A stretch of DNA of 64,000 nucleotides from Tubulanus polymorphus (taxonomy: Eukaryota; Animalia; Nemertea). Of the stretch, positions 1 to 38,559 are shown piece after piece. The stretch spans positions 1,116,001 through 1,180,000 of the forward strand of contig NC_134035.1 of NCBI RefSeq assembly GCF_964204645.1. Direction: 5' to 3'. Position 1 is the stretch's first letter. Each line of letters begins with the position of its first letter. The position numbers and the translations under genes were made by a program. Below the pieces are notes generated by a model. That model was not told the DNA's origin and ran no database searches. It worked only from the letters and a program-made list of their open reading frames with translations.

Positions 1-924
1 ATGCAAAATTCAGAACGTATTCATAGTATCATATTTAATCAGAATTAGGCGCCACACTGGTCTGTATTGTACGTAATAAGGAAATTTAAATTCCGGCGAT
101 AAATATGCACTACTATTTTAGTTCACAGAAATTCCGCTATCGTAATTCATAGGGGCAGCACTGAACGGTAGATATCTAACTCAGCCTCGCCATCTTACTG
201 TGGCATGCGAGTAATACAGATATTTTTCTTAGCCGAATTTCGTTCAATGTTTAATATGAGTCCATTGTATATGAATAATTCTACTATTGTTTTAGGTCTT
301 TCGAAGGGGATCATCTTTTTAAAACGAATTTCAAACTATTTTTGATAGAACTCTTTTGTCTGCGGAATGTACTAGTATCCGGTAAAGCGGTAGGCTCACA
401 TGCCAAAGGAAGAATTTCAAGCAAATTAAATATTATTCTCTAAAATAGTGCATTCAACTACTACTAATTCACTTTAACCAGAAAAAAATGCTCTGAAACT
501 ATTAAAGAAACAATTTTCTATGAAAGAATAAAGCTTAAGAGTAATTTGAATCGGGGATATTCCTAGCATCGTCTGGGAGAGAACGACGGGTTCTAGATGC
601 CAAGAGCATTTTTTTCAGTTGCCCCGTTTTTACTTCAAACACAGCCAATCGGTAGTGTCACATATTTAGTCCTCGTGGACATAAAGTTCACTATAAGTGA
701 AGTTAAGTTCTCCCAATATGTGTTCGTTTGTTTGTTTATCCTCTCGGTGACTTCTAAAGCTGCCCACACATATTTATCCAGTTCATCTGATGTAGGTCCT
801 GATCAACAAACAAAAACGTCAATATATAGTTCCTAATGATGACAAACTCCTAAAAAAATATACACGAAACTTTATAGATTTGAGGCCACCAGTCAAACAT
901 ACAGAGTTAGAGTTAAGTCTAATT

Positions 925-1650
925 ACCGGTGTATCAGAGAAATGGCAATCTGAGGTAGGCTACTCAACAAAATGAGTGTCAGGGGTCGAATATCTTTTGT
1001 CTCCGATTTCGATGAAATTCAGTATAGACATGTATTATGGGGTGCTGATCACAAATCTGAAAGAATTTTTCGGGTCCGAGGCCCAGAAAATGAGAAATTC
1101 GAATTTTTGGGGGACCCCCTAAATTTTCAAAAGGCCTTGGACCCCAGAGTTTTCGAGATATTCGAAATCTGATTGCAGATTTTGAATCAGCACCCCTGAA
1201 AATATAGAGGACTAAAATTTTAAACAAATCGAAGAGATTCGATTTTTTGGCTAAAAATGGCAAAAATCTAAGGTGTTAGTCCAGGAGTTTTTTTTCGGCG
1301 AAAAATTTTTTTTCTCTGATTCCTTCGAAAATTAGTAGGAATATGTATTCTGAGGTGTAGATTCCGGATCCGTAATCAGATTTTGAATCGGAATTCATCT
1401 TCATGAGCAAATAAGGGTTTTAATGCCCAAAATATGCACCCCAAAAATGGGGTACAAAGTCAAAATTTTTTTTTGGCCCAATTTTAATGAAATTTTGTGC
1501 AGACATGTTTCTTGGGGTGCTGATTACAAATATGAGGTTAGATTTTGGATCTGAAGCTCGTAAAATGAAATATTCAGGATTTCGTGTTTCGACCCCCTTA
1601 ATTTCGTCACAAATTTTGATGAAATTCGGTCCAAAAACGATTTTTATTCA
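925..1650. mobile_element. Non-autonomous DNA-transposon-like segment with repeated GGGGTGCTGAT/ATCAGCACCCC motifs (copies at ~3983, ~17945, ~40526, ~44488)
   Basis: Starts TA-CCGGTGTATCAG. Multiple direct and inverted GGGGTGCTGAT...AAATCTG and TTTTGATGAAATT motifs, as seen in subterminal arrays. No transposase ORF; superfamily not assignable. Confidence 0.5.
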
Positions 1651-1810
1651 ATGATGTCAAATATTCAATTAATTTTTAAGGTAGAAATTGATGCTCTTAC
1701 TAAAAACCCTGAATTATAATTCCTGCAACACAATTACAGGCTGCTTCAAATAACCACATTGACAATTCTTATGAAATGTAGTAAACAGAGTGAGTATCAA
1801 TCCACTTATA

Positions 1811-1912
1811 GTCCGGTTAGTTGACTAAATAGTCCAGTTAGTTCACATATAGTCTGGTTAGTTCACTAGTAGTCCAGTTAGTTCACTAGTAGTCCAGTTA
1901 GTTCACTAGTAG
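1811..1912. repeat. 20-bp minisatellite GTCCAGTTAGTTCACTAGTA (5 copies here, 4 in the other units)
   Basis: Directly visible; also at ~4869, ~9996, ~15456, ~18830, ~23689, ~41573, ~45377. Confidence 0.9.
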
Positions 1913-2562
1913 TGCGGAAGAAGTTGGCTGAAGAAGTAAAACTGTGATAAATTTCAGTTGAAGTCCACCACATCCAGTATTCGTGATGAAGTTTACGCCA
2001 CAGCCCGACAGAGGAAAACCTGAAATACTAAAATTGAAATCGCATTAACAGGGAGACTGACTGAGAGGTCGGGGGAGGATGGGATGAGAGGTTGGGGACA
2101 ATGGGGTGATGAGGTTGGGTGAGATTGAGGTTAGAGGTCGAGGGAGGATGGGGTGAGAGGTCGAGGGAGGATGGGTGAAAAGGGAAGCAAAACAGTACAA
2201 TTACTCTGACATAGTAAAGGCTTAAACAAAAGTTTTCAGCAGTTTTCAGTCACACTGGATTAACAGATTCTCGTTTTAAACAAGAGCCTAGCCTGTGGCA
2301 GTGGGAGAAAGCTGGTGTAACTAAACTGGTCGAGTCAGGGCCTGGCCGGCCTCACTGTTGTGTCGTGACGTGTCCGCGTGCGAAGTCAACTGGAGTGAGG
2401 TCCCCCCCCTGTGCGTCCCTGAGGACATGAAATATCATGAATGCTTATCTTTTTACCCAATATCAAATTCGTACATTTAAAATCATCGTGACTTTAAAGT
2501 CTTCATCAATTGAGGGAATAGTTCACTGTAAATAAAGAATTAGCGATTGAATTGAGCCCGCT

Positions 2563-3261
2563 CCACAGTGAAAATAGCGCGATCAATTCAATCTCGACCG
2601 TCTAGTGCTGCCCCTATGTATAACGATAGCGTGGAAAACGTGAACTAACATCATACTCGCTTGCCAGAGTCTTCGAACGGTAGTAGTGGACGAACTAATT
2701 ACCGATTTGCGGGCCGGATTCCGAGGAAAATTCTCAAACTCTGAAAACTGCTCTGAAACGTTTGAACCAAACAAATTTTCTATAAAAGAATAAGCCTTAA
2801 AAGAGTGAATTTGAATCGGGGTATTTCTAGTATGGTCTGGGAGAGAGCGACAGGTGTTTGTATGTTCCCTGATTATTTGCGCCCAATTAGAATACATCGA
2901 AGAAAAAATATGGACATTTTGTCAATTCAGATGATAAATTATCATTCAAAAATGTAAATGAATAAGTTATTCTGTATATAAATATTATATTAATTGATAA
3001 GTAAGTGAATTTTAGCTAAAAAGAATTAAATATGTTACCTAAAAAATAAGGAAATATCATGCAAAATTCAGAACGTATTCATAGTATCATATTTAATCAG
3101 AATTAGGCGCCACACTGGTCTGTATTGTACGTAATAAGGAAATTTAAATTCCGGCGGTAAATATGCACTACTATTTTAGTTCACAGAAATTCCGCTATCG
3201 TAATTCATAGGGGCAGCACTGAACGGTAGATATCTAACTCAGCCTAGCAATCTTACTGTGG
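2563..3261. repeat. Diverged ~85-bp inverted repeat pair (2563-2648 / 3176-3261) spanning each unit junction
   Basis: Perfect 15-bp core AGTGCTGCCCCTATG (2604-2618) / CATAGGGGCAGCACT (3206-3220). Flanking matches CGATAGCG/CGCTATCG, GTGAACTAA/TTAGTTCAC, CCACAGT/ACTGTGG. Confidence 0.8.
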
Positions 3262-6200
3262 CATGCGAGTAATACAGATATTTTTCTTAGCCGAATTTCG
3301 TTCAATGTTTAATATGAGTCCATTGTATATGAATAATTCTACTATTGTTTTAGGTCTTTCGAAGGGGATCATCTTTTTAAAACGAATTTCAAACTATTTT
3401 TGATAGAACTCTTTTGTCTGCGGAATGTACTAGTATCCGGTAAAGCGGTAGGCTCACATGCCAAAGGAAGAATTTCAAGCAAATTAAATATTATTCTCTA
3501 AAATAGTGCATTCAACTACTACTAATTCACTTTAACCAGAAAAAAATGCTCTGAAACTATTAAAGAAACAATTTTCTATGAAAGAATAAAGCTTAAGAGT
3601 AATTTGAATCGGGGATATTCCTAGCATCGTCTGGGAGAGAACGACGGGTTCTAGATGCCAAGAGCATTTTTTTCAGTTGCCCCGTTTTTACTTCAAACAC
3701 AGCCAATCGGTAGTGTCACATATTTAGTCCTCGTGGACATAAAGTTCCCTATAAGTGAAGTTAAGTTCTCCCAATATGTGTTCGTTTGTTTGTTTATCCT
3801 CTCGGTGACTTCTAAAGCTGCCCACACATATTTATCCAGTTCATCTGATGTAGGTCCTGATCAACAAACAAAAACGTCAATATATAGTTCCTAATGATGA
3901 CAAACTCCTAAAAAAATATACACGAAACTTTATAGATTTGAGGCCACCAGTCAAACATACAGAGTTAGAGTTAAGTCTAATTACCGGTGTATCAGAGAAA
4001 TGGCAATCTGAGGTAGGCTACTCAACAAAATGAGTGTCAGGGGTCGAATATCTTTTGTCTCCGATTTCGATGAAATTCAGTATAGACATGTATTATGGGG
4101 TGCTGATCACAAATCTGAAAGAATTTTACGGGTCCGAGGCCCAGAAAATGAGAAATTCGAATTTTTGGGGGACCCCCTAAATTTTCAAAAGGCCTTGGAC
4201 CCCAGAGTTTTCGAGATATTCGAAATCTGATTGCAGATTTTGAATCAGCACCCCTGAAAATATAGAGGACTAAAATTTTAAACAAATCGAAGAGATTCGA
4301 TTTTTTGGCTAAAAATGGCAAAAATCTAAGGTGTTAGTCCAGGAGTTTTTTTTCGGCGAAAAATTTTTTTTCTCTGATTCCTTCGAAAATTAGTAGGAAT
4401 ATGTATTCTGAGGTGTAGATTCCGGATCCGTAATCAGATTTTGAATCGGAATTCATCTTCATGAGCAAATAAGGGTTTTAATGCCCAAAATATGCACCCC
4501 AAAAATGGGGTACAAAGTCAAAATTTTTTTTTGGCCCAATTTTAATGAAATTTTGTGCAGACATGTTTCTTGGGGTGCTGATTACAAATATGAGGTTAGA
4601 TTTTGGATCTGAAGCTCGTAAAATGAAATATTCAGGATTTCGTGTTTCGACCCCCTTAATTTCGTCACAAATTTTGATGAAATTCGGTCCAAAAACGATT
4701 TTTATTCAATGATGTCAAATATTCAATTAATTTTTAAGGTAGAAATTGATTCTCTTACTAAAACCCTGGATTATAATTCCTGCAACACAATTACAGGCTG
4801 CTTCAAATAACCACATTGACAATTCTTATGAAATGTAGTAAACAGAATGAGTATCAATCCACTTATAGTCCGGTTAGTTGACTAAATAGTCCAGTTAGTT
4901 CACATATAGTCTGGTTAGTTCACTAGTAGTCCAGTTAGTTCACTAGTAGTGCGGAAGAAGTTGGCTGAAGAAGTAAAACTGTGATAAATTTCAGTTGAAG
5001 TCCACCACATCCAGTATTCGTGATGAAGTTTACGCCACAGCCCGACAGAGGAAAACCTGAAATACTAAAATTTAAATCACATTAACAGGGAGACTGACTG
5101 AGAGGTCGGGGAGGATGGGATGAGAGGTTGGGGACAATGGGGTGATGAGGTTGGGTGAGATTGAGGGAGGATGGAGTTAGAGGTCGAGGGAGGATGGGTG
5201 AGAGGTCGAGGGAGGATGGGTGAAAAGGGAAGCAAAACAGTACAATTACTCTGACATAGTTAAGGCTTAAGCAAAAGTTTTCAGCAATTTTCAGTCACAC
5301 TGGATTAACAGATTCTCGTTTTACACAAGAGCCCAGCCTGTGGCAGTGGGAGAAAGGCGTTGTAACTAACTGGTCGAGTCAGGGCCTGGCCGGCCTCACT
5401 GTTGTGTCGTGACGTGTCTGCGTGCGAAGTCAACTGGAGTGAGGTCCCCCTGTGCGTCCCTGAGGACATGAAATATCATGAATGCTTATCTTTTTACCCA
5501 ATATCAAATTCGTACATTTAAAATCATCGTGACTTTAAAGTCTTCATCAATTGAGGGAATAGTTCACTGTAAATAAAGAATTAGCAATTGAATTGAGCCC
5601 GCTCCACAGTAAAACTAGCGCGATCAATTCAATCTCGACCGTCTAGTGCTGCCCCTATGTATAACGATAGCGTGGAAAACGTGAACTAACATTATACTCG
5701 CTCGCCAGAGTCTTCGAACGGCAGTAGTGGACGAACTAATTACCGATTTGCGGGCCGGATTTCGAGGAAAATTCTCAAACTCTGAAAACTGCTCTGAAAC
5801 GTTTGAACCAAACAAATTTTCTATAAAAGAATACGCCTTGAAAGAGTAAATTTGAATCGGGGTATTTCTAGTATGGTCTGGGAGAGAGCTACAGGTGTTT
5901 GTATGTTCCCTGATTATTTGCGCGCAATTAGAATACATCGAAGAAAAAATATGGACATTTTGTCAATTCAGATGATAAATTATCATTCAAAAATGTAAAT
6001 GAATAAGTTATTCTGTATATAAATATTATATTAATTGATAAGTAAGTGAATTTTAGCTAAAAAGAATTAAATATGTTACCTAAAAAATAAGGAAATATCA
6101 TACAAAATTCAGAACGTATTCATAGTATCATATTTAATCAGAATTAGGCGCCACACTGGTCTGTATTGTACGTAATAAGGAAATTTAAATTCCGGCGGTA

Positions 6201-6606
6201 AATATGCACTACTATTTTAGTTCACAGAAATTCCGCTATCGTAATTCATAGGGGCAGCACTGAACGGTAGATATCTAACTCAGCCTCGCAATCTTACTGT
6301 GGCATGCGAGTAATACATATATTTTCCTTAGCCGAATTTCGTTCAATGTTTAATATGAGTCCATTGTATATGAATAATTCTACTATTGTTTTAGGTTTTT
6401 CGAAGGGGATCATCTTTTTTAAAACGAATTTCAAACTATTTTTGATAGAACTCTTTTCTCTGCGGAATGTACTAGTATCCGGTAAAGCGGTAGGCTCACA
6501 TGCCAAAGGACGAATTTCAAGCAAATTAAATTTTATTCTCTAAAATAGTGCATTCAACTACCACTAACACTGTAACCAGAACAGAAGCCCTGAAACTATT
6601 ACAATT

Positions 6607-6987
6607 GATGTCCACGCCTGACAATATTCGTTAGCCATTTTTGCCGTGTTTTACTCCGTCATACTTGGAACGATAATGGCGACATATGCACAAAAGTGTA
6701 CAGACTCGTATCTGGAAGCAGGTCTGGTTCGGGTAGAGCTGATCCCACCGAATTGATTTTAGCACGTGCGTGGGAGTTTGGTGATGAATCTGTGTAATTT
6801 ATTTTGCTGGCTACCGTTAATCATCGTTCAGTTTTGCGTCGTATTCGGGGTTCAAATACCGAATCAGGTGGCGGCTTGGCTGGCCGTTCCTTTCTTACTG
6901 ATTAACTCGTCCAATCCCCTTCTTTACACCATACTGACTATCGATATGAAATCCATTCGAGCAAAAACTAAACGCTTTCGACATTAA
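6607..6987 (+). pseudogene. GRL101/LGR-like rhodopsin-class GPCR fragment (TM5-TM7), disrupted copy
   Basis: Translates QYSLAIFAVFYSVILG..YAQ, then CNLFCWLPLIIVQ..G.QIPNQVAAWLAV..INSSNPLLYT. Premature TGA, frameshifts, 5'-truncated at the repeat junction. Confidence 0.8.
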
Positions 6988-8361
6988 ACAATTTGAACTT
7001 GAACATACGGAAGCGATGAGGCTCCGAATCTTCCCAAAAACGAAAGTGAAATTGTACAACTTAACTATTTTTCTCTCACAAGCCCGCCACACCTGGCAAA
7101 CCCCAAAACCTGCCGAACTGAGTGAGTCTGAGGAGATGAAAGAACTATTTAACACAACGAACGACAAAAAACCCTCAGAGATTATTTCTATTGTCCGCTT
7201 ACCACGTCAGATAAGAAACGATCGAGCCCTGGCAAGCGAGGAAAAGGTCCCGTTTTGCTATGGCAAACGAGACCAATTTTTACACACATGTCTAATACAT
7301 ATCGATACAAGAAAAGAACGAAAATGAATTCCAACTTACCCCTCAGTTTGATGACACGAATCACTAAAATTAATCAATGTTCTATTTGGTTGAAGATGGT
7401 GACGCTTAGAACTCAGGGCCGTACTTAGCGGGGGAGTTTAGTCCTATCTTATTACCATATGGAAAATCCCACGTATATTCATCTTGGTCAGTCAATATCA
7501 TCCTGAATCTCTGCTAATTTAAACTGCACACGGTCCACACACGGTAGATATTCTCCCAAATCCTTCCGTGTCGTAAGGCAGTATATAAGTTTAAGTTTAA
7601 GTGTATATGTATTTATCCGAGTGATTCGTGTATAGAATGTATATAGGTTAATCGCGTCTGTCCCGGTCACGGTTCCATTGAGTCGAACGTGATGGAACAT
7701 TGTTCAAATATGAAACTTCAACCTCCAAACGACGTTGATAAACATAAAATTAATGTTGAATCATAATTGCATTGAAGTATTCACCATGTCTAGACAATTC
7801 CTTGAAGGGTTTCAACTAGCAGATTTCCACCAGCACCACAGTGGTCAAGATGGCGAAAAGGGAATAAAATCAGGGCTTTCCCAGGTTCGAATCCAATCTA
7901 GAACTCATGCGGATTCAGGGCCGGATATCCCATGTTCGAAGACCCTAATCACTCCGCTTATGCTTAACTGTAACAGCTATCTTTTGTCCAAAATTGAAAA
8001 CAAAAATCCAAAACCAAATCTAAGATTTATAATATACTGTTTTTTATTTAGTATCAAAATTAAGAAAGATTTTTGGTCGATTTTCTTCAGTTGTCAACCG
8101 TAAAATATGTGTCTTTTTTAACACTTGTTTACTTTAAAAATAGATGCTCAATATTCAAAGAATTAAATTCTTCCTTTAACTAACCACATCTTTTTTTCTT
8201 GAGACTCAACATTAATGCAGATATCGATTCATAGCAGCCCGGAGCCTGCCTCCCTCGGCCCGGGTTTTGCAGCCCCTCAGACACTCAATACATTGCCGAT
8301 ATCCTTCTTCTAATGTTTGATCGTAAAGAATTCTCTCGAATAATTAGTTTGTAATCAAATA

Positions 8362-8496
8362 CAGTAGACGTCACTCAAGATCAACTCGATGTTGGTTGAA
8401 ATATTTTTTGTAACACTATTCATGAAATCAGATCGGATCACTCAAGTCGGGCACATTTTTGCAGCCCCAAATGTTCGACTTGACCCGAGTCTACTG
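8362..8496. mobile_element. Tc1/mariner (pogo/Tigger-like) MITE; copies at 13822-13956 and 22321-22452, decayed at ~48950
   Basis: TA|CAGTAGAC ... GTCTACTG|TA termini with TA target duplication. Confidence 0.75.
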
Positions 8497-9323
8497 TACT
8501 TGTTTCGAGGATGATGAGATATCACCTTGCCTCATTAGACATTAGTCATCTATCAACACGCTTTAAAATCATCCAGACTTCACAGTTTTATGTTCAACGA
8601 GAACACTCCAGGTCTTGCACACTCCAGGACTGGGTGTAAGTAAGACAGTGAAAAGGGCCAAAAGAGGGCGCTGATTCCAGGCTGCAGATCGATAGCTACA
8701 TAAGACGAATTCACACGCACAAAATGCTTACAAAGTTAGTTTATAATTTGCAAATGGTTTTCAGAGACAAAAATATATAAATATATACACATTAATAATT
8801 GTGGTCGATATAGGTATTGGTAAAATGAACGAATCGAACATTTAAACATTAAAACAGTCACCATATCTGTACATTACTAACATCAAAATAGAAACAAAAC
8901 ATTTGATAAAAATCCCAAGGAGGAGGGTGGTTCAGAGGGGTAGCCATCTTGAGCTACCAGCTTGTTTCGGTGAAACAGATAATGTCTATATATTCCAAAA
9001 TTATATGGTTAGAAACATCATCCCACCAGCCCACACCACAGTAGCCGGGAAAACTGAAATATCTACCTACGCAGAACGCCTAATTAGATGAATTAATTTT
9101 TACGATTTCCGAGGAATTCTTCACAAAAACGTAACACATTTTTAAAACATGAAACACTATACAATACTCTCGTATAAACGTAATCAAAAACACCGAAAGA
9201 AACCCGCATTACATCAACCAAACAGCGTGTAACAAAACAATACATCTTCAGGGCCGAGACAAACCTGTTGATTTCAGGTAAAGTTTGTTACATGTTTCTA
9301 GATGAAAGTCGAGCGCAAATTAA

Positions 9324-9411
9324 CTAAATCTTGAGTTGATAGAATTTTCCTATTGACACGCATGCCAACTGGAGGGGTGGCATCCACTGGGTACCCGACT
9401 GAAACCCATCC
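9324..9411 (-). pseudogene. Duplicated last coding exon of the Q/N-rich gene, with its 3' UTR continuing to ~8700 (also 14784-14871, 23283-23370)
   Basis: Near-identical to 49822-49909; lacks the native splice acceptor. Confidence 0.8.
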
Positions 9412-9530
9412 GAAGCAAAAAACTGCCGAACCGTGGCTCGTGTAGCGTTTAATAAAAAGAAAAAAATCTGAATACCACAAGAGAATTATTGTACATACTA
9501 TTATCTATAGTACTCACGCAGTGTAGTGGT

Positions 9531-9836
9531 CATACTAGTAGTACGGTGTGAGTGTGCGTGCTAGCGTGTGCGCGCATACTAGTAGTACGGTGTGAGTGTG
9601 CGTGCTAGCGTGTGCGCGCATACTAGTAGTACGGTGTGAGTGTGCGTGCTAGCGTGTGCGCGCATACTAGTAGTACGGTGTGAGTGTGCGTGCTAGCGTG
9701 TGCGCGCATACTAGTAGTACGGTGTGAGTGTGCGTGCTAGCGTGTGCGCGCATACTAGTAATACGGTGTGAGTGTGCGTGCTAGCGTGTGCGCGCATACT
9801 AGTAGTACGGTGTGTGTGCGTGCTAGCATGTGCGCG
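9531..9836. repeat. 44-bp minisatellite CATACTAGTAGTACGGTGTGAGTGTGCGTGCTAGCGTGTGCGCG x7 (also 14991-15296; single copy at ~23488)
   Basis: Unit starts at 9531, 9575, 9619, 9663, 9707, 9751, 9795. Confidence 0.95.
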
Positions 9837-12066
9837 CATGTATTAAATATGGGAGATCGACGGTGTTCCGTGCGTTCGAGCACACGCTTTTGAATATTAA
9901 TTAAGAAAAATGGTAATTCCACAAATCCACATACAGAGTTCCACACCTCCTGGAGTCCACCAATGACTGTTTTTTATGAGTATCAATCTACTTTAGTCCG
10001 GTTAGTTGACTATATAGTCCAGTTAGTTCACATATAGTCTGGTTAGTTCACTAGAAGTCCAGTTAGTTTCACTAGTAGTCCGGAAGAAGTTGACTGAAGA
10101 GAAGTGATAAATTTCAGATGAAGTCCACCACGTCCAGTATTCATGATGAAGTTTACACCACAGCCCGACAGAGGAAAACCTGAAATACTAAAATTGAAAT
10201 CACATTAACAGGGAGACTGACTGAGAGGTTGAGGGAGGATGGGATGAGAGGTTGGGGGAGGATGGGGTGATGAGGTTGGGGAGGATGGGGTGAGAGGTTG
10301 GGGGAGGATGGGTGAGAGGTTGAGGGAGGATGAAGTGAGAGGTTGGGGTGAGGTTTAGGGAGGATGGGGTGAGAGGTTTGGGGTGAGGTTGAGGGAGGAT
10401 GGGGTGAGAGGTTGAGGGAGGATGGGTGAAAAGTGATGCAAAACAGTACAATTACTCTGACATAGTAAAGGCTTAAGCAAAAGTTTTCAGCAGTTTTCAG
10501 TCACGCTGGATTAACAGATTCTCGTTTTACACAAGAGCCCAGCCTGTGGCAGTGGGAGAAAGCTGGTGTAACTAACTGGTCGAGTCAGCTGGTGTTAACC
10601 TGCTGAACAAGATGTGGTAGAAAAGAGGGACGAGGAAGTAACAGGAAATTGTAAGAACAGTTCATCAACAAGATTTGTGAAACTATCGCCTGCACCATGT
10701 GCAATGCAACCGGCTAGGGTAGTGCGGCCCGTGTAGGCTAGAAAGTGGTTTTTGACACCGAGTGAGGTCCCTGTTAGTCTAATACCTAGCCGTCGTTACC
10801 CAAACAACCCGAAGCCCGTAGTAACAACGACTGACTGATTCAGAATAAATTTAGTAGGTCCCTCACCTGCTCACTGTGTCGTGACGTGTCTGCGCCGAAG
10901 TCAACTGGAGTGAGGTCCCCGAGGACCTGAAATATCACAAATTCTTGTCTTTTTACCCAATATCAAAATTCGTACATTTAAAATCATCGTGGCTTTAAAG
11001 TCTTTATCAATTGAGGGAATAGTTCACTGTAAATAAAGAATTAGCGATTGAATTGAGCCCGCTCCACAGTAAAAATAGCGCGATCAATTCAATCTCGACC
11101 GTCTAGTGCTGCCGCTATGTATAACGATAGCGTGGAAAGCGTGAACTAACATCATACTCGCTCGCCAGAGTCTTCGAACGGCAGTAGTGGACGAACTAAT
11201 TACCGATTCGCGGGCCGGATTCCGAGGAAAATTCTCAAACTCTGAAAACTGCACTGAAACGTTTGAACCAAACAAATTTTCTATAAAAGAATAAGCCTTA
11301 AAAGAGTAAATTTGAATCGGGGTATTTCTAGTATGGTCTGGGAGAGAGCTACAGGTGTTTGTATGTTCCCTGATTATTTGCGCGCAATTAGAATACATCG
11401 AAGAAAAAATATGGACATTTTGTCAATTCAGATGATAAATTATCATTCAAAAATGTAAATGAATAAGTTATTCTGTATATAAATATTATATTAATTGATA
11501 AGTAAGTGAATTTTAGCTAAAAAGAATTAAATATGTTACCTAAAAAATAAGGAAATATCATACAAAATTCAGAACGTATTCATAGTATCATATTTAATCA
11601 GAATTAGGCGCCACACTGGTCTGTATTGTACGTAATAAGGAAATTTAAATTCCGGCGGTAAATATGCACTACTATTTTAGTTCACAGAAATTCCGCTATC
11701 GTAATTCATAGGGGCAGCACTGAACGGTAGATATCTAACTCAGCCTCGCAATCTTACTGTGGCATGCGAGTAATACATATATTTTCCTTAGCCGAATTTC
11801 GTTCAATGTTTAATATGAGTCCATTGTATATGAATAATTCTACTATTGTTTTAGGTTTTTCGAAGGGGATCATCTTTTTTAAAACGAATTTCAAACTATT
11901 TTTGATAGAACTCTTTTCTCTGCGGAATGTACTAGTATCCGGTAAAGCGGTAGGCTCACATGCCAAAGGACGAATTTCAAGCAAATTAAATTTTATTCTC
12001 TAAAATAGTGCATTCAACTACCACTAACACTGTAACCAGAACAGAAGCCCTGAAACTATTACAATT

Positions 12067-12447
12067 GATGTCCACGCCTGACAATATTCGTTAGCCATTT
12101 TTGCCGTGTTTTACTCCGTCATACTTGGAACGATAATGGCGACATATGCACAAAAGTGTACAGACTCGTATCTGGAAGCAGGTCTGGTTCGGGTAGAGCT
12201 GATCCCACCGAATTGATTTTAGCACGTGCGTGGGAGTTTGGTGATGAATCTGTGTAATTTATTTTGCTGGCTACCGTTAATCATCGTTCAGTTTTGCGTC
12301 GTATTCGGGGTTCAAATACCGAATCAGGTGGCGGCTTGGCTGGCCGTTCCTTTCTTACTGATTAACTCGTCCAATCCCCTTCTTTACACCATACTGACTA
12401 TCGATATGAAATCCATTCGAGCAAAAACTAAACGCTTTCGACATTAA
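12067..12447 (+). pseudogene. GRL101/LGR-like GPCR fragment, same as 6607-6987
   Basis: Same sequence at +5460 offset. Confidence 0.8.
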
Positions 12448-15400: not shown

Positions 15401-18400
15401 CCACACCTCCTGGAGTCCACCAATGACTGTTTTTTATGAGTATCAATCTACTTTAGTCCGGTTAGTTGACTATATAGTCCAGTTAGTTCACATATAGTCT
15501 GGTTAGTTCACTAGAAGTCCAGTTAGTTTCACTAGTAGTCCGGAAGAAGTTGACTGAAGAGAAGTGATAAATTTCAGATGAAGTCCACCACGTCCAGTAT
15601 TCATGATGAAGTTTACACCACAGCCCGACAGAGGAAAACCTGAAATACTAAAATTGAAATCACATTAACAGGGAGACTGACTGAGAGGTTGAGGGAGGAT
15701 GGGATGAGAGGTTGGGGGAGGATGGGGTGATGAGGTTGGGGAGGATGGGGTGAGAGGTTGGGGGAGGATGGGTGAGAGGTTGAGGGAGGATGAAGTGAGA
15801 GGTTGGGGTGAGGTTTAGGGAGGATGGGGTGAGAGGTTTGGGGTGAGGTTGAGGGAGGATGGGGTGAGAGGTTGAGGGAGGATGGGTGAAAAGTGATGCA
15901 AAACAGTACAATTACTCTGACATAGTAAAGGCTTAAGCAAAAGTTTTCAGCAGTTTTCAGTCACGCTGGATTAACAGATTCTCGTTTTACACAAGAGCCC
16001 AGCCTGTGGCAGTGGGAGAAAGCTGGTGTAACTAACTGGTCGAGTCAGCTGGTGTTAACCTGCTGAACAAGATGTGGTAGAAAAGAGGGACGAGGAAGTA
16101 ACAGGAAATTGTAAGAACAGTTCATCAACAAGATTTGTGAAACTATCGCCTGCACCATGTGCAATGCAACCGGCTAGGGTAGTGCGGCCCGTGTAGGCTA
16201 GAAAGTGGTTTTTGACACCGAGTGAGGTCCCTGTTAGTCTAATACCTAGCCGTCGTTACCCAAACAACCCGAAGCCCGTAGTAACAACGACTGACTGATT
16301 CAGAATAAATTTAGTAGGTCCCTCACCTGCTCACTGTGTCGTGACGTGTCTGCGCCGAAGTCAACTGGAGTGAGGTCCCCGAGGACCTGAAATATCACAA
16401 ATTCTTGTCTTTTTACCCAATATCAAAATTCGTACATTTAAAATCATCGTGGCTTTAAAGTCTTTATCAATTGAGGGAATAGTTCACTGTAAATAAAGAA
16501 TTAGCGATTGAATTGAGCCCGCTCCACAGTAAAAATAGCGCGATCAATTCAATCTCGACCGTCTAGTGCTGCCGCTATGTATAACGATAGCGTGGAAAGC
16601 GTGAACTAACATCATACTCGCTCGCCAGAGTCTTCGAACGGCAGTAGTGGACGAACTAATTACCGATTCGCGGGCCGGATTCCGAGGAAAATTCTCAAAC
16701 TCTGAAAACTGCACTGAAACGTTTGAACCAAACAAATTTTCTATAAAAGAATAAGCCTTAAAAGAGTAAATTTGAATCGGGGTATTTCTAGTATGGTCTG
16801 GGAGAGAGCGACAGGTGTTTGTATGTTCCCTGATTATTTGCGCCCAATTAGAATACATCGAAGAAAAAATATGGACATTTTGTCAATTCAGATGATAAAT
16901 TATCATTCAAAAATGTAAATGAATAAGTTATTCTGTATATAAATATTATATTAATTGATAAGTAAGTGAATTTTAGCTAAAAAGAATTCAATATGTTACC
17001 TAAAAAATAAGGAAATATCATGCAAAATTCAGAACGTATTCATAGTATCATATTTAATCAGAATTAGGCGCCACACTGGTCTGTATTGTACGTAATAAGG
17101 AAATTTAAATTCCGGCGGTAAATATGCACCACTATTTTAGTTCACAGAAATTCCGCTATCGTAATTCATAGGGGCAGCACTGTACGGTAGATATCTAACT
17201 CAGCCTCGCCATCTTACTGTGGCATGCGAGTAATACAGATATTTTTCTTAGCCGAATTTCGTTCAATGTTTAATATGAGTCCATTGTATATAAATAATTC
17301 TACTATTGTTTTAGGTTTTTCGAAGGGGATCATCTTTTTAAAACGAATTTCAAACTATTTTTGATAGAACTCTTTTGTCTGCGGAATGTACTAGTATCCG
17401 GTAAAGCGGTAGGCTCACCTGCCAAAGGAAGAATTTCAAGCAAATTAAATATTATTCTCTAAATAGTGCATTCAACTACCACTAATTCACTGTAACCAGA
17501 AAAGAATGTTCTGAAACTATTAAAGAAACAATTTTCTATGAAAAAATAAAGCTTAAGAGTAAATTTGAATCGGGGATATTCCTAGTTTCGTCTGGGAGAG
17601 AACGACAGGTTCTAGATGCCAGGAGCATTTTTTTTCAGTTGCCCCGTTTTTAGTTCAAACACAACCAATCGGTAGTGTCACATATTTAGTCCTCGTGGAC
17701 ATAAAGTTCCCTATAAGTGAAGTCAAGTTCTCCCAATATGTGTTCGTTTGTTTGTTTATCCTCTCGGTGAGTTCTAACGCTGCCCACACATATTTATCCA
17801 GTTCATCTGATGTAGGTCCTGATCAACAAACAAAAAAGTCAATATATAGTTCCTAATGATGACAAACTCCTAAAAAAATATACACGAAACTTTATAGATT
17901 TGAGGCCACCAGTCAAACATACAGAGTTAGAGTTAAGTCTAATTACCGGTGTATCAGAGAAATGGCAATCTGAGGTAGGCTACTCAACAAAATGAGTGTC
18001 AGGGGTCGAATATTTTTTGTCTCCGATTTCGATGAAATTCAGTATAGACATGTATTATGGGGTGCTGATCACAAATCTGAACGAATTTTTCGGGTCCGAG
18101 GCCCAGAAAATGAGAAATTCGAATTTTTGGGGGACCCCCTAAATTTTCAAAAGGCCTTGGACCCAAGAGTTTTTGAGATATTCGAAATCTGATTTCAGAT
18201 TTGGAATCAGCACCCCTGAAAATATAGAGGACTTAAATTTTAAACAAATCGAAGAGATTCGATTTTTTGGCTAAAAATGGCAAAAATCTAAGGTGTTAGT
18301 CCAGGAGTTTTTTTTCGGCGAAAAATTTTTTTTCTCTAATTCCTTCGAAAATTAGTAGGAATATGTATTCTGAGGTGTAGAATCCGGATCCGTAATCAGA

Positions 18401-20569
18401 TTTTGAATCGGAATTCATCTTCATGAGCAAATAAGGGTTTTAATGGCCAAAATATGCACCCCAAAAATGGGGTACAAAGTCAAAATTTTTTTTTGGCCCA
18501 ATTTTAATGAAATTTTGTGCAGACATGTTTCTTGGGGTGCTGATTACAAATATGAGGTTAGATTTTGGATCTGAAGCTCGTAAAATGAAATATTCAGGAT
18601 TTCGTGTTTCGACCCCCTTAATTTCGTCACAAATTTTGATGAAATTCGGCCCAAAAACGATTTTTATTCAATGAAGTCAAATATGCAATTAATTTTTAAG
18701 GTAGAAATTGATTCTCTTACTAAAACCCTGGATTATAATTCCTGCAACACAATTACAGGCTGCTTCAAATAACCACATTGACAATTCTTATGAAATGTAG
18801 TAAACAGAGTGAGTATCAATCCACTTATAGTCCGGTTAGTTGACTAAATAGTCCAGTTAGTTCACATATAGTCTGGTTAGTTCACTAGTAGTCCAGTTAG
18901 TTCACTAGTAGTGCGGAAGTAGTTGGCTGAAGAAGTAAAACTGTGATAAATTTCACTTGAAGTCCACCACATCCAGTATTTGTGATGAAGTTTACACCAC
19001 AGCCCGACAGAGGAAAACCTGAAATACTAAAATTGAAATCACATTAACAGGGAGACTGACTGAGAGGTCGGGGAGGATGGGATGAGAGGTTGGGGATAAT
19101 GAGGTGATGAGGTTGGGTGAGATTGAGAAAGGATGGGGTTAGAGGTCGAGGGAGGATGGGGTGAGAGGTCGAGGGAGGATGGGTGAAAAGGGAAGCAAAA
19201 CAGTACAATTACTCTGACATAGTTAAGGCTTAAGCAAAAGTTTTCAGCAGTTTTCAGGCACACTGGATTAACAGATTCTCGGTTTACACAAGAGCCCAGC
19301 CTGTGGCAGTGGGAGAAAGGCGTTGTTACTAACTGGTCGAGTCAGGGCCGGGCCGGCTTCACTGTTGTGTCGTGACGTGTCTGCGTGCGAAGTCAACTGG
19401 AGTGAGGTCCCCCTGTGCGTCCCTGAGGACATGAAATATCATGAATGCTTATCTTTTTACCTAATATCAAATTCGTACATTTAAAATCATCGTGACTTTA
19501 AAGTCTTCATCAATTGAGGGAATAGTTCACTGTAAATAAAGAATTAGCGATTGAATTGAGCCCGCTCCACAGTAAAACTAGCGCGATCAATTCAATCTCG
19601 ACCGTCTAGTGCTGCCCCTATGTATAACGATAGCGTCGAAAACGTGAACTAACATTATACTCGCTTGCCAGAGTCTTCGAACGGCAGTAGTGGACGAACT
19701 AATTACCGATTTGCGGGCCGGATTTCGAGGAAAATTCTCAAACTCTGAAAACTGCTCTGAAACGTTTGAACCAAACAAATTTTCTATAAAAGAATACGCC
19801 TTGAAAGAGTAAATTTGAATCGGGGTATTTCTAGTATGGTCTGGGAGAGAGCTACAGGTGTTTGTATGTTCCCTGATTATTTGCGCGCAATTAGAATACA
19901 TCGAAGAAAAAATATGGACATTTTGTCAATTCAGATGATAAATTATCATTCAAAAATGTAAATGAATAAGTTATTCTGTATATAAATATTATATTAATTG
20001 ATAAGTAAGTGAATTTTAGCTAAAAAGAATTAAATATGTTACCTAAAAAATAAGGAAATATCATACAAAATTCAGAACGTATTCATAGTATCATATTTAA
20101 TCAGAATTAGGCGCCACACCGGTCTGTATTGTACGTAATAAGGAAATTTAAATTCCGGCGGTAAATATGCACTACTATTTTAGTTCACAGAATTTCCGCT
20201 ATCGTAATTCATAGGGGCAGCACTGAACGGTAGATATCTAACTCAGCCTCGCAATCTTACTGTGGCATGCGAGTAATACAGATATTTTCCTTAGCCGAAT
20301 TTCGTTCAATGTTTAATATGAGTCCATTGTATATGAATAATTCTACGATTGTTTTAGGTTTTTCGAAGGGGATCATCTTTTTTAAAACGAATTTCAAACT
20401 ATTTTTGATAGAACTCTTTTGTCTGCGGAATGTACTAGTATCCGGTAAAGCGGTAGGCTCACATGCCAAAGGATGAATTTCAAGCAAATTAAATTTTATT
20501 TTCTAAAATAGTGCATTCAACTACCACTAACACTGTAACCAGAACAGAAGCCCTGAAACTATTACAATT

Positions 20570-20951
20570 GATGTCCACGCCTGGCAATATTCGTTAGCCA
20601 TTTTTGCCGTGTTTTACTCCGTCATACTTGGAACGATAATGGCGACATATGCATAAAAGTGTACAGACTCGTATCTGGAAGCAGGTCTGGTTCGGGTAGA
20701 GCTGATCCCACCGAATTGATTTTAGCACGTACGTGGGAGTTTGGTGATAAATCTGTGTAATTTATTTTGCTGGCTACCGTTAATCATCGTTCAGTTTTGC
20801 GTCGTATTCGGGGTTCAAATACCGAATCAGGTGGCGGCTTGGCTGGCCGTTCTTTTCTTACTGATTAACTCGTCCCTCAATCCCCTTCTTTACACCATAC
20901 TGACTCGATATGAAATCCATTCGAGCAAAAACTAAACGCTTTCGACATTAA
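20570..20951 (+). pseudogene. GRL101/LGR-like GPCR fragment, third copy
   Basis: CWLP and NSSLNPLLY motifs; extra frameshift after TILT. Confidence 0.8.
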
Positions 20952-23900
20952 ACAATTTGAACTTGAACATACGGAAGCGCTGAGGCTCCGAATCTTCCCA
21001 AAAACGAAAGTGAAATTGTACAACTTAACTATTTTTCTCTCACAAGCCCGCCACACCTGGCAAACCCCAAAACCTGCCGAACTGAGTGAGTCTGAGGAGA
21101 TGAAAGAACTATTTAACACAACGAACGACAAAAAACCCTCAGAGATTATTTCTATTGTCCGCTTACCACGTCAGATAAGAAACGATCGAGCCCTGGCAAG
21201 CGAGGAAAAGGTCCCGTTTTGCTATGGCAAACGAGACCAATTTTTACACACATGTCTAATATATATCGATACAAGAAAAGAACGAAAATGAATTCCAACT
21301 TACCCCTCAGTTTGATGACACGAATCACTAAAATTTATCAATGTTTTATTTGGTTGAAGATGGTGACGCTTAGAACTCAGGGCCGTACTTAGCGGGGGAG
21401 TTTAGTCCGATCTCATTCCCATATGGAAAATCCCACATATATTCATCTTGGTCAGTCAATATCATCCTGAATCTCTGCTAATTTAAACTGCACACGGTCC
21501 ACACACGGTAGATATTCTCCCAAATCCTTCCGTGTCGTAAGGCAGCATATAAGTTTAAGTTAAGTGAATATGTATTTATCCGAGTGATTCGTGTATAGAA
21601 TGTATTATAGGTTAATCGCGACTGTCCCGGTCACGGTTCCATTGAGTCGAACGTGATGGAACATTGTGCATGTATGAAACTTCAACCTCCAAACGACGTT
21701 GATAAACATAAAATTAATGTTGAATCATAATTGCATTGAAGTATTCACCATGTCAAGACAATTCCTTGAAGGGTTTCAACTAGCAGATTTCCACCAGCAC
21801 CACAGTGGTCAAGATGGCGAAAAGGGAATAAAATCAGGGCTTTCCCAGGTTCGAATCCAATCTAGAACTCATGCGGATTCAGGGCCGGATATCCCATGTT
21901 CGAAGACCCTAATCACTCCGCTTATGCTTAACTGTAACAGCTATCTTTTGTCCAAAATGGAAAATAAAAAACCAAAACCTAAGATTTATAATATACTGTT
22001 TTTTATTTAGTATCAAAATTAAGAAAGATTTTTGGTCGATTTTCTTCAGTTGTCAACCGTAAAATATGTGTCTTTTTTAACACTTGTTTACTTTAAAAAT
22101 AGATGCTCAATATTCAAAGAATTAAATTCTTCCTTTAACTAACCACATCTTTTTTTCTTGAGACTCAACATTAATGCAGATATCGATTCATAGCAGCCCA
22201 GAGCCTGCCTCCCTTGGCCCGGGTTTTGCAGCCCCTCAGACACTCAATACATTGCCGATATCTTTCTTCAAATTTTTGATCTTAAAGAATTCTCTCGAAT
22301 AATTAGTTTGTAATCAAATACAGTAGACGTCACTCAAGATCAACTCGATGTTGGTTGAAATATTTTTTGTAACACTATTCATGAAATCAGATATCACTCA
22401 AGTCGGGCACATTTTTGCAGCCCCAAATGTTCGACTTGACCCGAGTCTACTGTACTTGTTTCGAGGATGATGAGATATCACCTTGCCTCATTAGACATTA
22501 GTCATCTATCAACACGCTTTAAAATCATCCAGACTTCACAGTTTTATGTTCAACGAGAACTTTAGTATCTGTCTTGCACACTACAGGACTGGGTGTAAGT
22601 AAAACAGTGAAAGGGGCCTGAAGAGGGCGCCGATTCCAGGCTGCAGATCGATAGCTACATAAGACGAATTCACATGCACAAAATGCTTACAAAGTTAGTT
22701 TATAATTTGAAAATGGTTTTCAGAGACAAAAATATATAAATATATACACATTAATAATTGCGGTCGATAAAGGTATTGGTAAAATGAACGAATCGAACAT
22801 TTAAACATTAAAACAGTCACCATATCTGTACATTACTAACATCAAAATAGAAACAAAACATATGATAAAAATCCCAAGGACGAGGGTGGTTCAGAGGGGT
22901 AGCCATCTTGAGCTACCGGCTCGTTTCGGTGAAACAAATAATGTCTATATATTCGAAAATTACATGGTTAGAAACATCATCCCACCGGCCCACACCACAG
23001 TAGCAGGGAAAACTGAAATATCTACCTACGCAGAACGCCTAATTAGATGAATTAATTTTTACGATTTCCGAGGAATTCTTCACAAAAACGTAACACATTT
23101 TTAAAACATGAAACACTATACAATATTCTCGTATAAACGTAATCAAAAACACCGAAAGAAACCCGCATTACATCAACCAAACAGCGTGTAACAAAACAAT
23201 ACATCTTCAGGGCCGAGACAAACCAGTTGATTTAAGGTAAAGTTTGTTACATGTTTCTAGATGAAAGTAGAGCGCAAATTAACTAAATCTTGAGTTGATA
23301 GAATTTTCCTATTGACACGCACGCCAACTGGAAGGGTGGCATCCACTGGGTACCCGACTGAAACCCATCCGAAGCAAAAAACTGCCGAACCGTGGCTCGC
23401 GTATCGTTTAATAAAAAGAAAAATCTGAATACCACAAGAGAATTATTGTACATACTATTATCTATAGTACTCACGCAGTGTAGTGGTCATACTAGTAGTA
23501 CGGTGTGTGTGCGTGCTAGCGTGTGCACGTATGTATTAAATATGGGAGATCGACGGTGTTCCGTGCGATCGCGCACACGCTTTTGAATATTAATTTAGAA
23601 AAATGGTAATTCCACAAATCCACATACAGAGTTCCACACCTCCTGGAGTCCACCACTGACTGTTTTTTATGAGTATCAATCCACTTTAGTCCGGTTAGTT
23701 GACTAAATAGTCCAGTTAGTTCACATATAGTCTGGTTAGTTCACTAGAAGTCCAGTTAGTTCACTAGTAGTCCGGAAGAAGTTGACTGAAGAAGTAAAAC
23801 TGTGATAAATTTCAGTTGAAGTCCACCACGTCCAGTATTCGTGATGAAGTTTACACGACAGCCCGACAGAGGAAAACCTGAAATACTAAAATTGAAATCA

Positions 23901-25329
23901 CATTAACAGGGAGACTGACTGAGAGGTTGAGGGAGGATGGGATGAGAGGTTGGGGAGGATGGGGTGATGAGGTTGGGGAGGATGGGGTGATGAGGTTGGG
24001 GAGGATGGGGTGAGAGGTTGGGGGAGGATGGGTAAGAGGTTGAGGGAGGATGAAGTGAGAGGTTGGGGTGAGGTTGAGGGAGGATGGGGTGAGAGGTTGA
24101 GGGACAATGGGATGAGAGGTTGGGGGAGGATGGAGTGAGAGGTTGAGGGAGGATGGGGGGAGAGGTTGGGGGAGGATGGGGTGAGAGGTTGGGGGAGGAT
24201 GGGGTGAGAGGTTGGGGGAGGATGGGGTGAGAGGTTGAGGGTGGAAAATCATGAATTCTTATCGTTTTACCCAATATCAAATTCGTACATTTAGAATCAT
24301 CGCGGCTTTAAAGTCTTTATCAATTGAGGGAATAGTTCACTGTAAATAAAGATTTAGCGATTGAATTAAGCCCGCTCCACAATAGAATAGCGCGATCAAT
24401 TCAATCTCGATCGTCTAGTGCTGCCCCTATGTATAACGATAGCGTGGGAAATGTGAACTAACATAATACTCGCTTGCCAGAGTGTTCGAACTGCAGTAGT
24501 GGACGAACTAATTACCGATTTGCGGCCGGATTCCGAAAAAATTCCCAATATCTGAAAACTGCTCTGAAACGTTTGAACCAAACATTTGTTCTATTAAAGA
24601 ATAAGCCTTGAAAGAGTAAATTCAAATCGGGGTATTTCTAGTATGGTCTGGGAGAGAGCGACAGAAAAAATATGGACATTTTGTCAATTCAGATATCATT
24701 CAAAAATGTAAATGAATACTTTATTCTGTATATAAATACTATATTAATTGATAAGTAAGTGAATTTTAGCTAGAAATAATTAAATATGTTACCTAAAAAA
24801 TGAGGAAATATCATGCAAAATTCAGAACGTATTCATAGTATCATATTTAATCAGAATTAGACGACACACCGGTCGACACATAGATGATGCATGCCAGACA
24901 CCAAATGCACCTAATGTTGCCTTTGTGGACATCAAAGTGCCCTTTTGGGATGTGACAAGTTCTTCAAAATTGCTGTCCATGTTTCATTTTAGTGGTATAA
25001 GATGTTAGAATACAGGATATTGACACATTCAAGTTCTGAATTTTATCGATTGATGGCGCTATAGTCAGAACCGTGAATAAGAACCTAAATCCGCCATGTT
25101 TTAGTTCATTTGCGATAAAAAATCACTCGCTTCAAGGTTTTAGCGAGCGTTATTTTGCTTACAGTGCGTCATCACGCGTTATCCTTTCAGTACGACATCC
25201 TCACAATCGGTCGGATGCGATAAAACCTCACTTCAAAGGTTAGAAATCACTATAAATGTCTTAAATTTACCGAAAAAAGCAAATTCAGCGACAACACTGA
25301 CTAGCGTATGACGTCACAGCATCGTCCGC

Positions 25330-30553
<5,224 letters not shown>

Positions 30554-35470: not shown

Positions 35471-35513
35471 GATGGTTCAGCAGATCTACCAACATCGCTG
35501 GTGACGATACCGT

Positions 35514-35519
35514 TTATAT
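35514..35519 (-). promoter_or_regulatory. Candidate TATA box of the astacin gene
   Basis: TATAAA on the minus strand about 45 nt upstream of the ATG at 35470. Confidence 0.45.
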
Positions 35520-36825: not shown

Positions 36826-37103
36826 CATTTGAATTATATTTATCGTCTAGATTTTAAGCGTGTTAAATAGTTGAATAAATGAGTATGATGTTTTTTTTTT
36901 TCAAAGAAAGCATTGTATGAATTCCTAGAAATCTAATGATGTGTACCCCAGTGGTACCGTAGCTGCGAAATTCAAGTTTGGTCAGAAACGGATGATTTCA
37001 TTCAGAGTCGACATCGTCACGGCGTTGACCATTGTGACATCGCGGTTGTTTGTCCGAATATGAATGGCCGTCGAATATGTTCGAATGTTTTCCTGTCACA
37101 ATC

Positions 37104-38460: not shown

Positions 38461-38461
<1 letters not shown>

Positions 38462-38559
<98 letters not shown>
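38462..38559. repeat. Pure (CTG)32 trinucleotide microsatellite
   Basis: 98 uninterrupted nt. Confidence 0.97.

Follow-up and report, generated by a model that had tools for sequence, protein, structure and literature searches.

Tandem segmental duplication, together with non-allelic homologous recombination, underlies the copy-number variation of gene clusters, and macrosatellites and higher-order repeat duplicons are shared between particular chromosome regions. Canonical Helitrons have a 5′ TC and a 3′ CTRR terminus, carry a 16-20-nt palindrome ~11 bp from the 3′ end, and insert between A and T without a target-site duplication (PMC4067079); Helentron-associated elements such as DINE-1 are small, with 13-bp subterminal inverted repeats, a 3′ stem-loop, and TT targets (PMC4067079).

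The window, by which we mean the whole 64,000-nucleotide stretch of Tubulanus polymorphus DNA analysed here (NC_134035.1, positions 1,116,001 to 1,180,000; contig C11 below), contains at positions 1-24874 a head-to-tail array of short (S, 3.06 kb) and long (L, 5.46 kb) units in the order S-S-L-L-S-L. Self-BLAST thus bears out the modular tandem array reported in a preliminary description of this DNA. We think it likely, with a probability of about 0.8, that homologous recombination within a cluster of tandem segmental duplications built the array. The features of the window are as follows.

1-3058, plus strand: short unit S1 (self-BLAST)
3059-6099, plus strand: short unit S2 (self-BLAST)
6100-11559, plus strand: long unit L1, with backbone 1-504, cargo 6602-9411, and X 9412-9916 (seven copies of a 44-bp VNTR)
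11560-17019, plus strand: long unit L2, with cargo 12062-14871 and X 14872-15376
17020-20062, plus strand: short unit S3 (self-BLAST)
20063-24874, plus strand: long unit L3, with cargo 20565-23370 and X 23371-23609 (one 44-bp copy)
24875-35811, minus strand: host-gene segment of the block, parts of which are found again, in part inverted, in blocks 1 and 2
~26.8-30.3 kb, minus strand: SLC3A2_N-type gene in the host-gene segment
31.9-34.7 kb, minus strand: gene for an astacin with five ShK domains in the host-gene segment
35812-40281, plus strand: conserved non-coding head, which precedes backbone arrays genome-wide
40282-44254, plus strand: older-type backbone unit S′, ~90-91% identical to the S units
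44264-47114, plus strand: final backbone unit in block 4, truncated at unit position 504
47115-49909, plus strand: in-context cargo, matching the cargo of L1-L3
47117-47500: receptor pseudogene fragment, TM5 to stop, within the in-context cargo
47611-48946: mid-part of the cargo, also present beside arrays on contig C9
49019-49909, minus strand: 3′ end of the Q/N-rich gene, within the in-context cargo
49910-52700, minus strand: single-copy remainder of the Q/N-rich gene, with open stretches at 50691-50951, 51457-51690, and 52012-52176

S1 is not the left edge of the array, there being one further unit at C11:1115372, to the left of the window. The common backbone proposed in the preliminary description is present in all units, each having the 20-bp repeats (unit positions ~1800-1915), a 23-bp G-rich VNTR, and a 70-nt imperfect inverted repeat with arms that are 71-73% complementary; Rfam and tRNA scans gave no matches. 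In the L units 2.81 kb stands in place of ~1.3 kb of the short unit, and the swap point, ...CTGAAACTATTA at unit position 504, is exact and the same in each of L1-L3 and at 47114/47115. The segment that occupies this place in the short units (T, unit ~510-1790) had been regarded as transposon-like and the units as swapping cargo, but this was a misreading: T is a standard part of the family's unit, and we reject it as an independent transposon, as all 40 scored matches (from 186 candidates) lie in array regions on C9, C11, and C12. To the right of X in L1 the backbone resumes at an older-type position just before unit position 1791, while the right part of L3 is a partial backbone unit cut at unit position 62, and L3 is the positional counterpart of the cargo copies at block ends. 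In S′ the G-rich VNTR has grown to ~34 copies, and there is a short 509/698 junction at the right end.

By self-BLAST, L1 and L2 are 99.2% identical and their cargo is identical, S1 is 97.6% identical to S2 and 96.4% to S3, and the S2+L1 pair matches the S3+L3 pair at 97.6% over 7.2 kb; this nesting of similarities (99.2%, 97.6%, 96.4%) indicates that duplication was probably stepwise. The copy number of L1 and L2 depends on the assembly because of their near identity, and the order or number of such units could in principle have been misassembled, a reading to which a T segment 42.6 kb away, ~100% identical to that of S1, also lends something. However, most units are 1-4% apart and differ in VNTR length, the eight copies of the cargo agree in their junctions, and the haplotype mosaics described below are coherent, and we regard misassembly as very improbable.

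The window belongs to a series of four tandem blocks of ~35-53 kb each at C11:1.01-1.17 Mb, with host genes, a conserved 4.5-kb head, a backbone array, and cargo. The heads are at C11:1024532, 1065869, 1108068, and 1151500, with spacings of 41.3, 42.2, and 43.4 kb. Host-gene segments have been co-duplicated, their copies being 97-99% identical and, in blocks 1 and 2, partly inverted; because these two blocks are rearranged relative to that of the window, a description as four equal blocks is a simplification. The head contains a 44-bp repeat (38721-39266) and a 13-bp repeat (39818-40126), and has alternative left limits at 36566, 36973, and 37077.

The cargo of the long units is host DNA, and its donor arrangement is present in two neighbouring blocks upstream. 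An in-context copy had been noted beside a backbone copy, and we confirm it at 47115-49909, next to the rest of the Q/N-rich gene (49910-56000), which is single copy. The cargo begins with a receptor TM5-TM7 fragment (RXFP1 is the best solved relative, E 1.3e-11) that already has a frameshift and stops. This agrees with the G-protein-coupled receptor assignment made earlier. The last exon of the Q/N-rich gene, also assigned to the cargo, is putative; the gene was inspected as separate open stretches, and a short minus-strand open frame at the cargo end (49918-49799), following a likely splice acceptor of the gene, is a candidate for that exon. At C11:1048716 (L037) and C11:1084067 (L038) the cargo extends leftward into an open receptor frame of 626 codons with Ldl_recept_a, LRR_8, and complete 7tm_1 matches, and there is no backbone on the left side; at the breakpoint only ~11/13 bases are shared between these loci and the backbone. 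One version of a frameshifted third intracellular loop is present in L1-L3 and the in-context copy, and is absent from both full-length copies. There are eight copies of the full cargo, all at C11:1.03-1.17 Mb; partial copies include one at C11:2.74 Mb and the mid-part alone twice on C9, and a tblastn search with the L037 receptor found no receptor remnants beside the C9 arrays.

The junction between backbone position 504 and TM5 is identical in five L copies and the in-context copy, and the junction running from 49909 through X to backbone is present in 7/7 of the non-context cargo copies. X, the stretch between cargo and backbone, is absent from the preliminary description; it comprises ~240 bp and a 44-bp VNTR of 1-7 copies. 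In every L unit the cargo and X are flanked by backbone copies as direct repeats, and in L037 and L038 the coordinates place backbone within ~1.3-1.8 kb after X. X has only two further occurrences, one at C11:2739901, beside an incomplete copy of the cargo, and the other, at 89% identity, at C11:1010503, which is 14.0 kb to the left of head 1; the X-to-head spacing in the other blocks is 12.1-14.4 kb. Because the C11:1010503 copy lies at the distance from head 1 expected of a block edge, we have dropped the idea that X is untemplated filler or a template-switch insert. Judged by its coordinates, the 49909/X cargo end appears to be a block junction, and we infer that X marks the block edge.

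The recombination that we favor would have proceeded in three steps; we infer their order, as well as the size and mechanism of the deletion. In the first, a block of ~35-53 kb would have been tandemly duplicated to give four copies at C11:1.01-1.17 Mb. Besides X and a partial backbone unit, the block would have held the host genes, the head with a backbone array, the gene for an LDLa-LRR-7TM receptor, and, downstream of the latter, ~2.4 kb that extend into the Q/N-rich gene at its 3′ end. Of its two breakpoints, the distal one would be 49909, within the Q/N-rich gene, and the proximal one the left edge of X, so that all blocks except the last would end with 49909 joined to X. Subsequently, a microhomology-mediated deletion of ~7 kb in one block may have fused backbone position 504 to TM5 of the receptor, leaving a dead TM5-TM7 fragment. 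Cargo and X would then have lain between two direct backbone repeats, and unequal crossover (non-allelic homologous recombination) could have duplicated the 5.46-kb interval to form the L units, reshuffled both kinds of unit, and moved the L form into other blocks.

Recombinant haplotypes are found in both cargo and backbone. Over the leftmost 500 cargo columns, the L copies match the in-context copy at 98% and the full-receptor copies at 96%; starting at column 1550, the figures are 95-99.7% for the full-receptor copies and 90-95% for the in-context copy. The backbone that separates L1 from L2 has 37 informative sites, of which the 24 leftmost follow the L2>S3 backbone and the 13 rightmost follow S2>L1; the changeover is within homologous backbone, ~650 bp short of the cargo junction. 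Mosaic haplotypes that switch inside direct backbone repeats point to unequal crossover, one of two routes put forward in the preliminary description, and the block structure also supports it. We note that a partial copy of cargo, X, and backbone lies inverted 1.6 Mb away, and this counts against the recombination model.

The second route put forward was rolling-circle transduction. On this reading the backbone would be a non-autonomous Helitron- or Helentron-type element, and bypass of its 3′ terminator would have given rise to both the concatemers and the 2.8-kb flank transduction in the L units. The backbone is indeed a dispersed non-coding repeat in head-to-tail arrays, the genome does contain Rep-encoding Helitrons (58 matches to PF14214, some of them in long open frames), a CTAG at unit 593-596 is close to the ends of three independent arrays, and Helitron tandem arrays and gene capture are documented in other systems (PMC4067079, PMC12001565). 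However, none of the 58 Rep matches is on C9 or C11, neither backbone nor head has a long ORF or a Pfam match, and TC and CTRR ends were not found, in agreement with the earlier failure to find a Rep/helicase ORF or a CTRR hairpin end. The arrays end at ~589-616, off the CTAG, with one end variant lacking it, and a search for a 3′ palindrome found only 4-5-bp stems. The L boundaries (504, ~1790) differ from the array phase of the family (~617) and haplotypes switch inside the backbone; the cargo is also known with an open receptor frame and a backbone-free left side, and it stays local, all full copies being in the one cluster on C11. Arrays are furthermore copied as whole multi-unit blocks, not amplified site by site. 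We therefore consider rolling-circle transduction extremely unlikely. Two candidate termini were discarded separately: a TC start at unit 658, which alignment of array edges places within sequence homologous to the head end (the last ~50 bp of the head are homologous to the inter-unit spacer), and a hairpin with CTAG at 569-596 as a 3′ end, ruled out by the same kind of alignment and by folding (DNA fold z-scores of 0.41 for 445-508, -0.74 for 540-600, -1.49 for 560-620, and 0.42 for 46995-47114).

As the preliminary description had proposed, the backbone is not confined to this locus. We count no fewer than 77 heads and no fewer than 157 units of the family, which lie in both orientations and are 88-97% identical, and all of the copies listed are in the first ~5.6 Mb of five contigs, C8, C9, C11, C12, and C22 (~6% of the genome). 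This abundance in two orientations raises the possibility that the composite of head and array (at least 12-15 kb) is a large, regionally targeted, non-autonomous mobile element, spread by transposition and having a variable middle that is a preferred capture site, the L units still arising by recombination. It is consistent with such an element that arrays are dispersed as intact multi-unit blocks with units matching by position, and that two independent flanks (L011 versus L008/L018) part at one and the same base following ...GCGACAGGCGTTTTGA. Another, independent variant of the unit, V2 (L012, L009, and L005), moreover has the same part of the unit replaced as in L, its breakpoints being displaced by only 13 bp and ~85 bp relative to L (the L and V2 breakpoint sequences are ...CTATTA and ...ATGCC, respectively); this clustering hints at a preferred break region, which plain recombination does not predict. 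Set against this, the left boundaries tried as element termini (35812, 36566, and 36973) all run into further shared sequence or differ by class, no TIR, TSD, or coding capacity was found in the composite, neighbouring non-repeat DNA is duplicated along with it, and the regional restriction is more readily explained by ectopic exchange among particular chromosome regions than by transposition. The right flanks of dispersed copies are mostly unique. Transposition of the composite thus seems unlikely, and we view with somewhat greater doubt the more specific notion of an undescribed large non-coding mobile duplicon, a block of at least 12 kb moving between the proximal few Mb of certain chromosomes and having a mid-unit hotspot (~490-1800) at which host DNA would be joined in time and again. 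If it were true, the duplicon would seed direct repeats that drive birth and death among the receptor and protease genes nearby.

Recombination within the duplicated cluster, which we prefer, is an ordinary mechanism and leaves current understanding of mechanisms unchanged. The chimeric unit nonetheless mimics transposon gene capture, although one block duplication, one deletion, and unequal crossover can build it, and the steps are directly readable because the donor arrangement is still present in neighbouring blocks. One LDLa-LRR-7TM receptor, from a greatly expanded family, is destroyed in some blocks and open in others, and the distribution of this lineage-specific 3-kb repeat family may be a marker of regions between which sequence is exchanged.

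Helitron arrays with captured genes (PMC4067079; in Xenopus, PMC12001565) likewise consist of non-coding head-to-tail repeats with gene fragments in some units, but here there is no TC/CTRR, 16-20-nt 3′ palindrome, or nearby Rep, the cargo is not dispersed, and its donor arrangement sits in the same cluster. Elements of the DINE-1 type (PMC4067079) are similarly non-coding with internal tandem repeats (20-bp, 23-bp, and 44-bp here), although the present unit is 3 kb and the composite at least 12 kb, the only inverted repeat found is the imperfect 70-nt one inside each unit, and folding gave no significant stem-loop. With macrosatellites the family shares kb-scale units, short arrays, the copying of whole arrays between loci with units matching by position, and an occurrence limited to the proximal few Mb in a small number of contigs; it differs in the fixed non-repeated head and fixed phase of each array. 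As in duplications arising by non-allelic homologous recombination, direct repeats bound the amplified interval, a junction of single origin is present in all copies, the copies are clustered and co-oriented, mosaic haplotypes switch inside the repeats, and host genes are co-duplicated. What sets the present case apart is that a dispersed 3-kb tandem family supplies the flanking repeats, each of them being one of its units, and for this reason short and long units interleave in one array.

Self-comparison of the window bears out the layout given in the preliminary description: short (S, ~3.06 kb) and long (L, 5.46 kb) units that share a backbone lie head to tail in one array, and the L units carry a cargo of ~2.8 kb running from a receptor TM5–TM7 fragment to the 3′ end of a Q/N-rich gene. 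Bare coordinates are those of the window, C8, C9, C11 and the like are contigs, and "unit n" is a position within a unit.

Array units from self-comparison of the window, followed by the related unit pair and the in-context cargo
1-3058: S1
3059-6099: S2
6100-11559: L1
11560-17019: L2
17020-20062: S3
20063-24874: L3
40282-47114: related unit pair
47115-49909: in-context cargo

Similarities among these units are nested, with L1 matching L2 at 99.2%, the pairs S2+L1 and S3+L3 matching at 97.6% across 7.2 kb, and S1 matching S3 at 96.4%. The 23-bp G-rich VNTR of each unit ranges from ~5 to ~34 copies (41804-42623, 2050-2175, 10222-10426, 23920-24245). Long ORFs are scarce in the window, and tRNA and Rfam scans of it returned no match.

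The full cargo has eight copies in the 268 Mb genome searched, all at C11:1.03-1.17 Mb: five in L units, the in-context copy, and two with no backbone on the left. Its first 387 bp are a receptor TM5-to-stop fragment, which has RXFP1 as its best solved relative (E 1.3e-11) and shares 86–88% identity with dozens of paralogues located on C12, C8 and C5 (353 candidates); many of the 353 matches to these last 387 bp of receptor sequence show a regular ~7.6-kb tandem spacing in C12:4.76-4.94 Mb. At the two loci without left backbone (L037 and L038) the cargo runs leftwards into a 626-codon open frame, which reaches the edge of the sequence examined and has matches to Ldl_recept_a, LRR_8 and, in full, 7tm_1.

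Cargo copies without left backbone, and their LDLa-LRR-7TM (relaxin-receptor or GRL101-type) receptor frames, mutually 98% identical
C11:1048716: cargo copy, L037
C11:1084067: cargo copy, L038
C11:1047218-1049095 (L037:3-1880): receptor frame
C11:1082569-1084446 (L038:3-1880): receptor frame

A frameshifted third intracellular loop and two stops are common to the in-context and all L copies, and are absent from the full-length ones; this common loop argues that a single deletion, which would have removed ~5–7 kb, created the left cargo junction (504/TM5) in a single pseudogene lineage. The breakpoint has imperfect microhomology, the receptor reading TGAATCTAATTA before it and CAATTG after it, and the backbone TGAAACTATTA before it and AAG after it. 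In a second unit variant (loci L012, L009 and L005), ~520 bp of different DNA takes the place of the part of the unit that is also replaced in L, and its breakpoints lie 13 bp and ~85 bp away from the L breakpoints. Two C9 loci have the cargo mid-part (47611-48946) as well, ~420 bp past their array ends and with no receptor remnant found beside the arrays; the mid-part may have accompanied the family from early on, the receptor gene having come in between the two only later.

The deletion at the left junction would leave the cargo and X, the stretch between cargo and backbone in L units, flanked by direct backbone repeats at a distance of 5.46 kb. If these repeats crossed over unequally, exactly this 5.46-kb interval would be duplicated, and S and L units could interleave freely; an S+L pair would be duplicated first and L later, a stepwise order with which the nested unit identities appear to agree. 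Unequal crossover was one of two routes raised in the preliminary description, and it is supported by mosaicism in both cargo and backbone. The left part of the cargo in L copies is 98% identical to the in-context copy versus 96% to the full-receptor copies, and the right part is 95–99.7% identical to the full-receptor copies versus 90–95% to the in-context copy. At 37 informative sites in a 1.2-kb stretch between units, the L1-L2 backbone segment equals that of L2 to S3 at the left 24 sites and that of S2 to L1 at the right 13, which places a haplotype switch near unit 2830-2910, ~650 bp ahead of the cargo junction. Since the switch lies within the backbone, cassettes seem to have been exchanged by crossover in homologous backbone, and not at element ends.

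The right end of the cargo is plausibly the last exon of the Q/N-rich gene. Except for the in-context copy, every cargo copy (seven in all) stops at the position matching 49909 and passes into X, which comprises about 240 bp and a 44-bp VNTR; backbone follows, starting again about 60 bp short of unit 1791 in the older unit type. The 44-bp VNTR varies from 1 to 7 copies among otherwise near-identical L units. Beyond the cargo copies, X occurs only at C11:2.74 Mb (98%, beside a partial inverted cargo) and C11:1010503 (89%, alone). The Q/N-rich gene beyond 49909 is single-copy; a ~150-bp dispersed repeat in its region (51853-52000) has 830 candidate matches at 78–90% identity on many contigs.

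Heads, the conserved ~4.5 kb before backbone arrays
C11:1024532: head 1
C11:1065869: head 2
C11:1108068: head 3
C11:1151500: head 4

By match coordinates, the distances from X to the next head are 14.4, 12.9 and 12.1 kb, and the lone X-like copy at C11:1010503 lies 14.0 kb before head 1, with a host segment of the 24875 type 1.9 kb after it. The simplest reading is that a block of 35–53 kb, from X to 49909, was duplicated in tandem, the right cargo junction (49909/X) being the block junction; the single-copy Q/N-rich gene would then follow the last block only. Within the host segment are an SLC3A2_N-type gene and an astacin gene that has five ShK domains; in blocks 1 and 2 part of the segment is inverted.

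Astacin/ShK segments
31890-34731, minus: astacin metalloprotease exon, and an exon whose five ShK domains are separated by Thr/Pro-rich linkers
C11:1019306-1024534: duplicated and inverted, just left of head 1
C11:1062827-1065871: duplicated and inverted, just left of head 2

A ~190-bp dispersed repeat at 28436-28630 has thousands of candidate copies (5244 at first look) at 91–100% identity; they occur on almost every large contig, frequently as inverted pairs lying side by side, and the repeat is probably a MITE or SINE-like element of very recent origin. A 1.09-kb segment of the short unit, the T segment, is ~100% identical between 700-1790 and C11:1074117-1075207, in two blocks 42.6 kb apart, and the surrounding units differ by 1–4%; this near-identity suggests recent gene conversion.

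The backbone is dispersed in the genome, as had been proposed: a 1.1-kb probe gave 459 candidate matches genome-wide, and a conserved 22-mer (unit position 2686) at least 157 at up to two mismatches (reversed control, 0), on several contigs. It is always arrayed, with 2–4 or more head-to-tail copies in 18 of 18 loci examined, a spacing mostly of 2.8–3.8 kb and an about constant phase (start near unit 617-658, end near 589-616). The head (~35812-40281; 44-bp and 13-bp tandem repeats), which is non-coding and has at least 77 candidate copies, precedes every array whose left edge was captured; among the matches listed, all copies lie in the first ~5.6 Mb of C8, C9, C11, C12 and C22. A 217-codon open frame in the head (38663-39316) consists wholly of the 44-bp repeat and is most likely an accident of its period; neighbouring ORFs have no Pfam match. 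At C11:187065-201290, six 22-mer matches are spaced strictly 2841 bp apart, more uniformly than any array in the window.

A maximum-likelihood tree of 44 backbone segments groups units by array position across loci; one clade (99/97 support) unites the final units of three C9 arrays and excludes their own neighbours. This grouping argues that arrays were copied as whole blocks and not amplified at each site. One unit has an 814-bp insertion (L014:5490-6302) whose ends are mutual inverted copies, ~79% similar to 25008-25278; it looks like a small terminal-inverted-repeat transposon. The T segment (unit ~700-1790) had been called transposon-like, a view we reject, as all 40 scored matches (of 186 candidates) lie in array-holding regions of C9, C11 and C12. 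Two independent right flanks of the family diverge at the same base; its left end is not defined from the boundaries compared.

Helitrons are recognized by a 5′ TC, a 3′ CTRR, a 16–20-nt palindrome about 11 bp from the end, and insertion between A and T (PMC4067079). The TC at unit 658 was rejected as a 5′ end, the last ~50 bp of the head aligning with the inter-unit spacer, as was the CTAG at unit 593-596 as a 3′ end, independent array ends stopping elsewhere and one end variant lacking CTAG. Candidate 3′ regions fold no better than shuffles (z-scores 0.4, -0.7, -1.5, 0.4), Pfam gave no match for ORFs of the backbone or the head, and the Helitron Rep domain (PF14214) has 58 genome matches, none on C9 or C11. 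The TC end, CTAG ends and 3′ folds speak against the rolling-circle Helitron route of the preliminary description; the family itself may be either a large mobile element or a duplicon that passes between particular chromosome regions.
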